Notes: generated by a model from the letters alone, not told the origin. DNA of 18,815 nt from Salpingoeca rosetta (GCA_033442325.1 JAWQFM010000019.1:959856-978670); one strand, 5' to 3'. Numbered from the stretch's first letter, positions 6,118 to 10,400 are shown. Numbers and translations are program-made.

Positions 6118-7074
6118 CCGTGAAACGATCATCGGCGTTCTGCCAGATGGGCGCCGTCCCCAAACGCAGTGCATCGGGGCTCTCCAGAAGTGCAAACGAG
6201 GACGCAAACACGTCCTCAACAAACAGCGTGGAGCCGTCGTCGGTCAGCGGCGTGAAGTAGTCTGGCTCAATTGCGTACGAGATGCTGGTGATGTTCACGG
6301 TGTACATGACACCGAGGTCGGCGTCGTAGCGCAACATTCGGTCGCCAACAGCAAACTCGCCAGTGAAGATGAACTCGCCTGCAGGCTGCACCGTCACGCC
6401 GTCAGCAACGCACACGTCCTCGTCTGCGCGGAACACAAAGTGGTCGGGTGTGGCCGACATCAGCGCAGGGTTGCCGTCATTGTCCGTGTAGTGCAGCTCG
6501 ACAGACGTCGTGGTGCCGTTCAGCTCCACGTGCTGGAAGGTCTTGAGCTCGCAGTAGCCAAGCGCGTTGCCGGCCGATGCCTGCAGGCAAAGCACGCGGT
6601 CGCCAGTCTTCAGATCACGCAGCTGCACCCGCTCGCCATTCTCCAGAATCACCTCGGCCCAACCAGGAAAGCATGATGGGCTGGTGGTGGTTGGGTCCGA
6701 CAGCACGACAGGGCAGTCTGCACCAGAGCCCTTCAGCCGCGCGCTGCAGCCATGGGTAAAATTGTCGAAGAGCGATCCTGATTGCAGCGTTTGTGTCTCG
6801 CCAGTTGCGTCCGCCAGAAGTGCAAAGTAGTTGATATCGGATGAAATGTCCAAGGCCCAGAACTCGGTGGTGTTGCTGAGGGCGCTTGCATGTGGGTTGC
6901 TGGGCTCATCCGAAACACCAACACACTTAATCTCCGTGCCGACAGGTGCACCGCCGTCAATAACGAACTGAATACCCTCTGAATAGTCGATATAGAACGT
7001 GGACGCTGCGGGGGTTGAAATTGATGGGCAGATGCTTTTGGGAAACGCTGAGGTTGTTGTTGTTGTCTTCTCGC
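6118..7074 (-). pseudogene. Hint/Hog module copy 1: Thr linker, 4-Cys domain, Hint domain, SRR-like region truncated by the LTR
   Basis: The frame is open from the putative acceptor (gtgcag|GC at 7074): GEKTTTTTSAFPKSICP...SPS|CFPG (Cys 6673)...TPDH...FTPLTDDGSTLFVEDVFASSF...APIWQNADDRFT. It then runs into antisense LTR sequence with a stop at 6077-6079. No upstream exon was identified with confidence. Confidence 0.82.
6194..6673 (-). other. Hedgehog/intein (Hint) domain, copy 1
   Basis: Same motifs as copy 2; 39 of the first 50 residues are identical between the copies. Confidence 0.93.
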
Positions 7075-7411
7075 CTGCACTTTGCTTGTGTTCGAGGAGG
7101 TGTGGGCTTCAGAGTGAAAATGCAGCTCCAAGAAAAACACAATGAACACAAGGAGCGAGCAGGGGGAAGCCCACGCCGTGGCATGAGCAACCCACTTCCC
7201 ACAAGCCCACACCTTCGTCAAGAATGCGCGTGGCATGAGAGCAACGGCACGAATTTGTCGCAACACAATGTGTTGCACGGCAACTCCGCACAAAAATTGC
7301 TTGCTTGCACGCAAAGCTGCGAAGAACTTTCAAGGCACAATTGGTTGTTTTGGCCAACAGCAATTAGGAACACGTAAAACCCGTCAAGCAGCCGGACAAC
7401 GTTGTTTTTGG

Positions 7412-7476
7412 CACACACACACACACACACACACACACACACACACACACACACACACACACACACACACACACAC
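7412..7476. repeat. (CA)n microsatellite
   Basis: Seen directly, just downstream of the Hint gene stop codon. Confidence 0.95.
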
Positions 7477-7485
7477 GCACAGAGT

Positions 7486-10400
7486 TTAGCTGATGTAAGT
7501 GGGAATGAGGTCAAGCATCTCCTGCTCGGAGAAGATGTGGCCTTGAGCGAGCTGCTGGCCAATGTAGCCAAGAAGGCCGCCAAAGTCAACCGTCTGGCCG
7601 CTGACGTTGGCCTGAACAATGAGGCGGGCGCGCTCCGCAACAAACGGGTGTAGGCCAACAGGGAAGTCTTTGCCAGCGGTTGGAACGCTGAAGCGGGCGT
7701 CGTCGTTCTGCCAGATGGGGGCGTTCAGCTTGCGCAGGGCCTCCGCGGATGCGAGGAAGGCAAACGAGGACGCAAACACGTCGTCCACAAACAGCGTGGA
7801 GCCGTCGTTGGTGACGGGTGAGTAGAACTCATTGTCCGTCGTCTCCGTGATGCTGGTGATGACGACGGTGTACACAAAGCCGGCGTCGTCGTAGCGCATG
7901 AGGCGGTCGCCTACAACAAAGTTCTCTGCAAAGATGAAGTCGCCGGCGGGCTTGGTGGTGGATGCGTTGGACACATCCACGTCCTCGCCAGCGCGGAAGA
8001 TGAAGTGGTCGGGGGTCGAGGTGAGCACACTGGCGTTACCGTCCTTGTCCGTGTAGTGCAGCTCCACAAAGGGGCTGGTCTTGTTGTGCTGGACGTTGAT
8101 GAATGTCTTCATGTCGCAGTAGGCCAGACTGTTACCGTTCGAAGCCGACAAGCACAGCACACGGTCGCCAGTCTTGAGGTCACGCAGCTGCACACGCTCG
8201 CCGCTCTCCAAGATAATCTCCGCCCAGCCAGGGAAGCAGGGTGCGGTAGAAGGCGGGTCAGTCACCACGAGCGGACACAGTCCGCTCGAGTTAGTGGGGC
8301 GAGCACTGCACACGTGGGTGAACGTGCCACCCTGGTTGCCAGTCCGCAGTGTGATGTCGACGCCCGTCTCTGCATCTGCTTCGATCGCGTTGTAGTCGCT
8401 GTCGTAGTCGGCGTTGTTTAAGGCGACGCCCCAAAAGTCCTCCTCTGACGTGGTGATGTTTTCATACATGGCGGCTGGGCTCGAGCTGAGTGCAACGCAG
8501 CGAATCGTGTTGCCGGTGTCGACGCCGGTCACAGTGAACTCAATTACGGTCACGTCAACAGTAGCCGTTGGAGTCGCGACTGCCGGACAGACAATTGTCG
8601 TCGTCGTCGTCGTTGTTGTTGTTGTTGTTGTTGTTGTTGTTGTTGTTGTTGTTGTTGTTGTTGTTGTTGTTGTTGTTGTTGTCGTCGTCGTCGTCGTNNN
8701 NNNNNNNNNNNNNNNNNNNNNNNNNNNNNNNNNNNNNNNNNNNNNNNNNNNNNNNNNNNNNNNNNNNNNNNNNNNNNNNNNNNNNNNNNNNNNNNNNNNN
8801 NNNNNNNNNNNNNNNNNNNNNNNNNNNNNNNNNNNNNNNNNNNNNNNNNNNNNNNNNNNNNNNNNNNNNNNNNNNNNNNNNNNNNNNNNNNNNNNNNNNN
8901 NNNNNNNNNNNNNNNNNNNNNNNNNNNNNNNNNNNNNNNNNNNNNNNNNNNNNNNNNNNNNNNNNNNNNNNNNNNNNNNNNNNNNNNNNNNNNNNNNNNN
9001 NNNNNNNNNNNNNNNNNNNNNNNNNNNNNNNNNNNNNNNNNNNNNNNNNNNNNNNNNNNNNNNNNNNNNNNNNNNNNNNNNNNNNNNNNNNNNNNNNNNN
9101 NNNNNNNNNNNNNNNNNNNNNNNNNNNNNNNNNNNNNNNNNNNNNNNNNNNNNNNNNNNNNNNNNNNNNNNNNNNNNNNNNNNNNNNNNNNNNNNNNNNN
9201 NNNNNNNNNNNNNNNNNNNNNNNNNNNNNNNNNNNNNNNNNNNNNNNNNNNNNNNNNNNNNNNNNNNNNNNNNNNNNNNNNNNNNNNNNNNNNNNNNNNN
9301 NNNNNNNNNNNNNNNNNNNNNNNNNNNNNNNNNNGCGTGTGTGTGTGTGTGTGTGTGTGTGTGTGTGTGTGTGTGTGTGTGTGTGTGCGTGTGTGTGTGT
9401 GTGTGCGTGTGTTTATGTGAGTGAGTGAGTGAGTGAGTGAGTGAGTGAGTGTGTGTGTGTGTACTTCAAAGGGTGTGCAAATGCTCGTGTGACAGATGCA
9501 AAGTGTGGTGGTGCGGTGCGCAACTACAAACAACAGCAGCACTCCATCATTGCTGCTGCACGATCAACATCTCATACCTTGCCGATGCAGGCATTGACAG
9601 TGCTCTCGCAGTCGTACGTGCAGTCTGGCAGCGTCGTGGTGGTTGTCGTAGTTGTCGTAGTAGTTGTTGTGGTCGTGGTCGTGGTCGTGGTCGTGGTTGT
9701 TGTGGTCGTGGTTGTGGTTGTGGTCGTGGTTGTGACTGGGACCTCCGTGACACTGGTGACGGTGCAGAAGTTGAAGCGGAACGAGGCCGCCGTTGCCACG
9801 CACGCACGCAGCGCATCCACGTGCTCAGAGTTGAGCGTGGTGGTGCGGAACACAGTGGCATTGACAACGTCAATCGTCGCCGCAGTGTCGCCGTTGTACC
9901 GGCACACCTGTCGTGGTCATGAATGACAGTGCCGGCACGTGCAGAAGGATGGTGAGTTGAGCTGGACGAGTGGAAAGAGGAGGAGGGGCAAAGGGAGGGG
10001 ATGCAAAATAAGGGGCAAAGAACGACAAAGTCCACTATCGGGTCCCTGCAGCACAGTCAACAACAACGGAAGCCCACGCGCAAGAAATGTTGTGTATTGA
10101 CACACGATGAAGTGTACAACAACAACAAACAACAACAAACAACAACAACAACAACAAACAACAACAACAACTGTCTTACAACAACAACAACAACAACAAC
10201 AACTACAACTACAACTACAACTACAACAGCAGCAGCAGCAACAACAACAACAACAACAACTGTCTTACAACAACAACAACAACTGTCTTACAACAACAAC
10301 AACAACAACAACAACAACAACAACAACAACAACAACAACAACAACAACAACAACAACAACAACAACAACAACAACAACAACAACAACAACAACACGCGCA

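Follow-up and report, generated by a model that had tools for sequence, protein, structure and literature searches.

The DNA described here is an 18,815-nt stretch of the genome of the choanoflagellate Salpingoeca rosetta (GCA_033442325.1 JAWQFM010000019.1:959856-978670). We refer to this whole stretch as the window and count positions from its first nucleotide. It is eukaryotic DNA, rich in (CA)n and interrupted by assembly gaps, and it carries one Ty3/gypsy-type element together with two paralogous open frames for Hedgehog-type autoprocessing (Hog) domains, copy 1 and copy 2, both on the minus strand. Their products share 60% identity over 242 aa (E 9e-103), and both match the Pfam Hint family (PF01079) above its cut-off of 29.7 bits (copy 1: 75 bits, E 8e-21; copy 2: 85 bits, E 5.5e-24). 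We consider it likely that these are adjacent genes of the Hoglet type, drawn from an S. rosetta family of at least ten, of which copy 2 is intact and transcribed and copy 1 is a silent pseudogene truncated by a long terminal repeat (LTR). We infer, further, that the Hog domain of such proteins would cleave itself. The layout of the pair is as follows.

6080-7108, minus strand: copy 1 open frame, of which 6119-7066 is the family-homologous part
7412-7481, no strand: (CA)35 microsatellite (Tandem Repeats Finder), directly past the copy 2 stop codon, in the inter-copy spacer of ~420 bp
7486-8697, minus strand: last exon of copy 2 (coding 7489-8697, stop codon 7486-7488)

Copy 2 has its own stop codon, the microsatellite and the spacer separate it from copy 1, and copy 1 lies in a different frame. 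Thus, these are two tandem genes and not one protein with two modules. A protein search with copy 2 returned the S. rosetta proteins PTSG_08068, PTSG_09162, and PTSG_07446 as its best matches. The last of these is copy 1 itself (identical over the family-homologous part). PTSG_08068 shares 87% identity with copy 2, and in PTSG_09162, a paralogue of 451 aa, a signal-like segment and a Cys-rich head precede the Hog domain. Database annotation of the three goes no further than hypothetical or Hint-domain protein. The paper on the S. rosetta genome treats Hedgling and Hedgehog (Hh)-signal domains, not the Hoglet-like Hint family (PMC4054682).

Residue positions were read from alignments made with HMMER against Drosophila Hh-C (1AT0, 6TD6) and its D46H mutant (6TYY). 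They confirm the residues that an earlier note on this DNA, made from the sequence alone, had picked out in two paralogous Hint modules. Cys1 (CFPGW) is present in both copies, and the T69/H72 pair of the TxxH motif reads TPDH in both. The residue at -1 is Ser in copy 1 (TSPS/C) and Pro in copy 2 (STAP/C). At the D46 position, copy 1 has His (CAC, in TFQH), which aligns with the His of 6TYY, and copy 2 has Asn (AAC, in TFIN). At the C143 position (ASCY in Hh), each copy has the second Ser of ASSF. An Asp and a Cys were looked for at these canonical positions by alignment to Hh-C, and it is His or Asn, and Ser, that are found there. The Cys residues that the earlier note had placed at Hint positions 29 and 41 are likewise present in both copies; their Drosophila counterparts are Ser29 and, in that protein's own numbering, Ser39, the choanoflagellate loop being two residues longer. 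In the predicted structure of copy 2, Cys29 and Cys41 lie on neighboring strands (31-36 and 42-55), and this placement, together with their co-occurrence among relatives (see below), offers indirect support for a putative disulfide between them.

The 3' end of copy 2 is intact, and the copy is both transcribed and subject to purifying selection. Its frame is open from an N gap to the stop codon, and the encoded protein ends ..PTYIS. It comprises the following features, of which the last three belong to the probable 5' part of the gene.

8596-8697, minus strand: poly-Thr stalk of 34 Thr codons (translation and a (GTT)n tandem repeat), running into gap 8698-9334
8239-8595, minus strand: fibronectin type III (FN3)-like domain by predicted fold, ~119 aa, four of them Cys, immediately ahead of the putative cleavage site
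7744-8238, minus strand: Hint module (HMMER alignment to 1AT0, 6TD6, and 6TYY; AlphaFold), with key codons Cys1 8236-8238, Cys29 8152-8154, Cys41 8116-8118, Asn (D46 position) 8095-8097, Thr and His of TPDH 8014-8016 and 8005-8007, and Ser (C143 position) 7765-7767
7489-7743, minus strand: helical tail like the sterol or adduct recognition regions (SRR/ARR) of other Hog proteins, in which motifs K (NAPIWQN) and L (GLHPF) are followed by ~50 residues in three predicted helices
9572-11853, minus strand: probable upstream exons of the copy 2 gene (tblastn of PTSG_09162 on the window, and the list of open reading frames [ORFs])
11791-11853, 11393-11500, 11104-11148, 10814-10912, and 10503-10622, minus strand: signal-like segment and Cys-rich head exons (tblastn with PTSG_09162)
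9572-9907, minus strand: exon with a second poly-Thr run, upstream of copy 2 across the N gap

Two stranded RNA-seq runs have reads on the sense (minus) strand throughout copy 2. Most of the reads on the conserved Hint part derive from paralogues (95-99% identity); the fast-evolving N-domain (8252-8533) is covered at a depth of 6-15 on the sense strand, with no variants. An exact contig of 1170 nt from run X4 spans 7489-8588 at a depth of 898, versus 2-5 in the spacer. No splice joints were seen in the RNA reads, and this part of copy 2 is therefore a single exon.

Copy 1 is a partial tandem duplicate that has lost its tail to the insertion of a Ty3/gypsy LTR; it is a young pseudogene. Its parts are listed here, type A being one of two catalytic subtypes of the family that are defined further below.

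6119-7066, minus strand: copy 1 (type A, PTSG_07446), consisting of 5 Thr, an FN3-like domain, and a Hint module ending ..APIWQNADDRFT, with key codons Cys1 6671-6673, His (D46 position, CAC) 6530-6532, and Ser (C143 position) 6197-6199
6674-7036, minus strand: four-Cys domain before the putative cleavage site, with no Pfam match
6077-6118, minus strand: false C-terminus, VLYRDVGSVSNVM plus stop, on the reverse strand of the LTR

The junction between frame and LTR lies at 6117/6118, right behind ..APIWQNADDRFT, which is the same point at which the earlier note had begun its pair of modules. Other type A genes continue ..RFTEPTAGKDFPEGLHPF.. to the common C-terminus, whereas copy 1 departs directly after RFT. 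The reverse strand of the 5' LTR of the same element encodes nearly the same peptide, ..VLYRDVGSVSSVM (ORF 1422-1775). Thus, the annotated C-terminus of PTSG_07446 is LTR sequence, and the annotation can be corrected: this entry is a gene remnant with a retrotransposon-derived C-terminus. Motif K alone is retained from the SRR-like tail, the rest having been replaced by the LTR. The 5' side is reduced as well: five Thr codons stand in place of the long Thr stalk, and the 430 bp that lead up to the copy 2 stop codon contain neither signal nor head exons for copy 1. No RNA reads fall on the unique parts of copy 1 (6654-7405 and 6184-6465) in the two stranded runs or in run X4, and every read at 6466-6653 carries paralogue-specific differences. 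The genome holds nine tails for ten modules, with no orphan among the tails. The displaced tail of copy 1 is absent from the window, from the readable part of the 10 kb upstream, and from the rest of the assembly, the 6 kb that adjoin the window (positions 3929-10000 of the preceding 10 kb) being read as N. As the frame is still open and the ratio of nonsynonymous to synonymous divergence (dN/dS) of its Hint part is ~0.15 against intact paralogues, any decay of copy 1 is recent.

These observations bear on the interpretation offered in the earlier note, in which both tandem modules are functional autoprocessing domains of a new, non-animal Hedgehog-like system, with adduct specificities that may differ between the paralogues. 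The presence of Cys1 and TPDH in both copies fits this interpretation, as do the open frame and the Hint dN/dS of copy 1, and an Hh Hint domain without its SRR (Hh-C17) can still form the thioester. We nevertheless judge it improbable, given that the tail of copy 1 is replaced by the LTR exactly after RFT, that signal and head exons are missing, and that the unique parts of the copy are silent. Nor is the system a separate one: both copies belong to the known choanoflagellate Hoglet/Hog family. What holds of the proposed difference between paralogues is that the family has two catalytic subtypes; what does not hold is that copy 1, a silent remnant truncated by the LTR, is a functional example of one of them.

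The element responsible for the truncation has the following parts.

1218-5541, plus strand: 5' LTR and gag-pol body (Pfam domains, genome-wide LTR unit boundaries)
1218-1462, plus strand: 5' LTR of 245 bp, TGTTG...CAACA, then a primer-binding-site-like TGGTAGCG
5902-6117, plus strand: visible part of the 3' LTR, which truncates copy 1; 96% identical to 1247-1463, with the remainder in gap 5542-5901

Between these ends (1218-6117, with internal N gaps at 2166-2344 and 5542-5901), Pfam matches occur in the order protease, RVT_1, RNase H, Integrase_H2C2, and rve (that is, protease, reverse transcriptase, RNase H, and integrase; PR-RT-RNaseH-IN). The 245-bp LTR unit recurs discretely elsewhere in the genome, with 5' copies that are likewise followed by TGGTAGCG. 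Near-identical units on contigs 4, 9, 32, and 36 indicate a gypsy element that is both recent and present in multiple copies. We see no target-site duplication around it, the flanks being ..GGAAG and CCGTG.., and this is a caveat on the insertion. An ORF at 91-1383 (plus strand) runs into the 5' LTR and has a match to copia-type gag (PF14223) at 25 bits, below the cut-off; in addition, the 40 bp directly before the 5' LTR are a repeat found at >20 genomic sites. The gag-like ORF and the repeated 40 bp together indicate that the gypsy element is nested in another mobile element.

Were a collapsed or misjoined repeat present near gap 5542-5901, the truncation of copy 1 would be an artefact and the real gene would be complete. 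The two internal N gaps of the element, the lack of a visible target-site duplication, the position of the 5' LTR within another repeat, and the 6 kb of N upstream of the window are all compatible with such an error. We give it a low probability, since 216 bp of unbroken sequence separate the junction from the gap, and an orphan type A tail is absent from the whole assembly. There is also no loose end at 6118/6119 with an alternative continuation into copy 1, and copy 1 lacks the 5' half of the gene too, a loss that is independent of the LTR.

The two copies are members of a larger set. A six-frame search of the S. rosetta assembly found ten PF01079 modules, all of them in open frames. They follow a common plan of 25-100 poly-Thr residues, a four-Cys domain of ~115 aa, the Hint module, and a tail of ~85 aa that ends ..YI(S/N). 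In a full-length member, a putative signal peptide and a Cys-rich head are followed by long, mucin-like poly-Thr stalks, an FN3-like domain, and, at the C-terminus, the Hog domain. In an alignment of the ten, two catalytic subtypes are apparent. Type A, with Thr or Ser at -1 and His at the D46 position, comprises copy 1 and five others, among them an intact gene at contig 30:329331-330095. In type B, which comprises copy 2 and three others, -1 is Pro and the D46 position is Asn. The codons at this general-base position are one base apart in the two types (CAC versus AAC; Asp is GAC). Cys1, TPDH, Ser at 143, Cys29, and Cys41 are invariant in all ten; motif J is also present throughout, but with Ser replacing its Cys.

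Between close paralogues, pairwise dN/dS lies at 0.06-0.17 for the Hint module and at 0.07-0.28 for the tail; between those of type B, the tail values are 0.07-0.19. Thus, both parts are under purifying selection. In the tree, the ten S. rosetta Hog domains group together as one clade (99/99), with the split between types A and B inside it, and the types are therefore not old orthologue groups. The existence of separate A and B orthologues in other choanoflagellates is rejected by this tree. Gene conversion may blur the single-clade result. Indeed, for the same close paralogue pairs, synonymous divergence is 1-2 in the FN3-like domain versus 0.14-0.4 in the Hint module and tail. This contrast suggests either that gene conversion homogenizes the Hog part or that the N-domains are much older and were shuffled on.

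Elsewhere in the genome, contig 36 (283648-293118) carries another pair of type A and type B Hoglet-like genes, within 6 kb of each other and on opposite strands, and the gypsy element of the window has LTR copies 10-25 kb from that pair (contig 36:302652 and 315672).

The Hog domain of copy 2 was modeled with AlphaFold from an alignment of 132 rows, used in place of the 10-paralogue alignment, with which the Hint part had a predicted local distance difference test (pLDDT) score <50. The resulting model has a pLDDT of 93 and a predicted template modeling (pTM) score of 0.89. Foldseek ranks 1AT0 first among its matches (TM 0.91 by target, root mean square deviation [rmsd] 2.8, E 1.8e-13) and 6TYY second (0.89), with inteins behind Hh-C at E 3e-9 or weaker. 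The Pfam alignment and structure prediction suggested in the earlier note agree, then, with its view that Hog autoprocessing modules occur here outside animals, and the choanoflagellate relatives described below bear this out. The SRR-like tail that it had recognized in copy 2 (AP...GLHPF) is also real: NAPIWQN..GLHPF aligns with Hh motifs K and L, in Hh-like proteins that read LAP..GIHWY. Models of Shh and Ihh in the ESM Atlas align with residues 1-224 of the copy 2 model, ~60 residues past the crystallized Hint core. On the basis of this overlap, the tail is SRR-like through motif L and the first helix. Its last ~30 residues are an extension common to the nearest relatives.

Ahead of the Hint module, the FN3-like domain was modeled in the 10-paralogue run with pLDDT 71-91 over residues 1-110. 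VIA-align to fibronectin type III gave Z 9.0 and rmsd 2.5 over 87 aligned residues. Because this is a common fold, assignment to the FN3/immunoglobulin-like class is moderately supported. Pfam searches of both ORFs and of PTSG_07446, PTSG_08068, and PTSG_09162 found nothing besides Hint, and no HH_signal (PF01085). As modeled, the FN3-like domain would lie at the C-terminal end of the product once released, and an adduct at that C-terminus, if there is one, would be borne by this domain.

To place these residues in a broader context, we used an exhaustive profile search, which returned 426 proteins at E<=1e-3. The nearest of these outside the S. rosetta genome come from Salpingoeca infusionum, Choanoeca flexa, C. 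perplexa, Monosiga brevicollis, Pompholyxophrys, and Vermistella. Residues were tallied in 122 complete representatives from outside S. rosetta. At the D46 position, 71 have His, 41 Asp, and 5 Asn, although His may be somewhat over-represented, as the representatives were ranked by similarity to a His/Asn profile. Position -1 is Gly in 55 and Pro in 5, and otherwise almost any residue; the C143 position is Cys in 84, Ser in 21, and Asn in 10. His72 is invariant (122/122). By these counts, the catalytic residues termed altered in the earlier note are the usual ones in this part of the family. Judged from the tallies, His at D46, Ser at C143, and a residue other than Gly at -1 are ordinary Hog states, and only the combination of Asn and Pro is rare. 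In many non-metazoan Hogs, Ser, Thr, or Asp is reported to stand in place of the motif-J Cys (PMC2362128). Asn at D46, itself rare, is accompanied by Pro at -1 and Ser143 in three of the five Asn cases outside S. rosetta, namely those of S. infusionum, C. flexa, and Pompholyxophrys.

The pair of Cys29 and Cys41 marks a small clade (n = 12 representatives), and Cys143 is absent from 12/12 of its members. Cys41 was never seen without Cys29 (12 versus 0; Fisher 4e-12, uncorrected for phylogeny). Close Hoglet-clade relatives, including ones with the Cys29/Cys41 pair, also occur in the transcriptomes of two non-choanoflagellates, Pompholyxophrys punicea and Vermistella antarctica. They may reflect a truly wide distribution or, alternatively, prey or contaminant sequence.

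What reaction these domains carry out can be proposed from their conserved residues. Cys1, aided by the Thr and His of TPDH, would attack the preceding peptide bond in an N-to-S acyl shift within the secretory pathway; formation of the thioester is expected from the conservation of Cys1 and TxxH. An incoming nucleophile would then resolve the thioester and release the Thr-rich N-terminal product. In type A, His occupies the general-base position, and transfer could be to a sterol-like alcohol. For Drosophila HhC mutants, PMC9163320 reports that D46H (D303H) keeps its structure, pKa, and full activity in cholesterolysis, with a wider sterol tolerance, and that D303N has raised cleavage by dithiothreitol (DTT). 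Sterol-type transfer by type A is plausible because the D46H enzyme is active and because the SRR-like tail of the S. rosetta proteins is constrained. Cholesta-5,7,22-trienol and ergosterol are produced by M. brevicollis, and genes of the sterol pathway are present in S. rosetta (PMC4967820).

Type B would also form the thioester. Since Asn cannot deprotonate a hydroxyl, however, its resolution would differ and might involve water, a more reactive nucleophile, or another base. A non-cholesterol adduct or plain hydrolysis, as raised in the earlier note, would have real footing only for this Asn/Pro type, to which copy 2 belongs. It is possible, although we consider it unlikely, that type B modules, in which -1 is Pro, D46 is Asn, and C143 is Ser, have ceased to transfer an adduct, and instead either hydrolyze the thioester or remain uncleaved as a structural C-terminal domain. 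Asn is no general base, the D303N mutant gains DTT cleavage, and Pro at -1 is rare (5/122 representatives); moreover, the recurrence of the Pro/Asn/Ser combination in S. infusionum, C. flexa, and Pompholyxophrys indicates that it is a stable state. Yet Cys1, Thr/Ser69, and His72 are invariant, and the SRR-like tail of type B is constrained like the Hint module (dN/dS 0.07-0.19). Sterol transfer is the one step for which Hh requires this region, and the constraint would be difficult to account for if the tail bound nothing. The equal constraint on tail and Hint core argues against purely hydrolytic release in particular.

Rather more tentatively still, type B might be a natural class of Hog domain that lacks the general base but still needs its tail, attaching its mucin-like product to something besides a sterol hydroxyl or relying on a different catalytic arrangement. 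If so, the His- and Asn-type paralogues, present together in one organism that can be cultured and transfected, would amount to a natural experiment on the origin of cholesterolysis. The possibility that Ser143 acts like the +1 nucleophile of an intein, to form a branched ester, was considered and found weak, as Ile, Gly, or Val occupies this position in other members of the clade. From this variation at position 143, a branched intermediate is probably not obligatory in the clade.

Several points weigh against the interpretation that we favor, an intact Hoglet-type copy 2 with a self-cleaving Hog domain beside an LTR-truncated copy 1. The N gap at 8698-9334 separates the copy 2 exon from the head exons, so that a single transcript is only probable. 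The frame of copy 1 is intact (343 codons), with the Hint constraint noted above. Its junction with the LTR is seen in one assembly only; other runs gave contigs that break off where the LTR ends, and an exact-product look-up for this junction gave no independent confirmation. Silence of copy 1 is drawn from RNA data of few conditions. As for chemistry, Pro at -1 strongly hinders the acyl shift in inteins, and type B could be slow or inactive. The Cys143 of animal Hh forms a branched thioester, and C143A and C143D abolish processing (PMC12054796); by analogy with these dead mutants, the loss of Cys143 could matter more than we assume. Lastly, activity of the S. rosetta members, and with it cleavage and any adduct, is something that we infer from conservation.

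One further feature of the window lies apart from the Hog genes. Exon-like ORFs at 12305-15450 (plus strand) are separated by stretches rich in GT/CA repeats, and the first of these exons has no Pfam match. We take them, presumably, to resemble a gene of the TMTC type (O-mannosyltransferase containing tetratricopeptide repeats [TPRs]).

The S. rosetta proteins belong with a family that has been known since 2006-2008, and their set is an expansion of it with two catalytic subtypes. PMC2362128 describes this choanoflagellate Hoglet/Hog family and, for Hoglet, a 200-residue Thr stretch ahead of the Hog domain. As far as that description extends, the S. rosetta proteins are like Monosiga ovata Hoglet and other choanoflagellate Hint proteins in having a putatively secreted N-part, a very long Thr stretch, and a Hog domain, and they come from the same lineage. 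A cellulose-binding-type domain is reported for M. ovata Hoglet; none was detected in the S. rosetta ORFs and annotated paralogues, in which Pfam sees Hint only, and the domain ahead of the putative cleavage site looks FN3-like. The nearest Hog sequences are those of M. brevicollis (MONBRDRAFT_36484 and MONBRDRAFT_11128), S. infusionum, and Choanoeca, which share both the Cys29/Cys41 pair and the loss of Cys143.

Comparison with Hh itself shows both the common core and the departures from it. As in Hh-C (1AT0; Shh), there is a Hint fold with Cys1, Thr69, and His72, and the SRR motifs K (AP) and L (G-x-H-x-aromatic) are present. Unlike Hh, the S. rosetta proteins have no Hedge domain; their -1 residue is Pro, Thr, or Ser and not Gly, D46 is His or Asn, C143 is Ser, an extra Cys pair is present, and the tail is ~30 aa longer. 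Type A has naturally the His that was introduced at the general-base position in the Drosophila D46H mutant 6TYY; that engineered protein, however, has Gly at -1 and Cys143, an Hh-type site, and type A is without both. Unlike inteins, copy 2 ends after its helical tail and has no C-extein.

Fusion of a Hog domain to an unrelated secreted N-part is also seen in nematode warthog, groundhog, and quahog and in other Hogs with an ARR (PMC2362128). Some nematode and non-metazoan Hogs have an extra Cys pair in the Hog domain as well (PMC2362128), and the nematode Hh-related proteins fall in a different clade from the S. rosetta modules. No report of the adduct of any non-animal Hog domain was found in the literature. 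With ten genes and two catalytic flavors in one laboratory model from among the closest relatives of animals, S. rosetta is a convenient organism in which to ask what Hog domains attach to Thr-rich cargo. Hog domains are widespread outside animals, and the S. rosetta family, which is unlike the Hoglets of other choanoflagellates in having at least ten genes and two catalytic subtypes, bears on how the cholesterol-transfer chemistry of Hedgehog arose.

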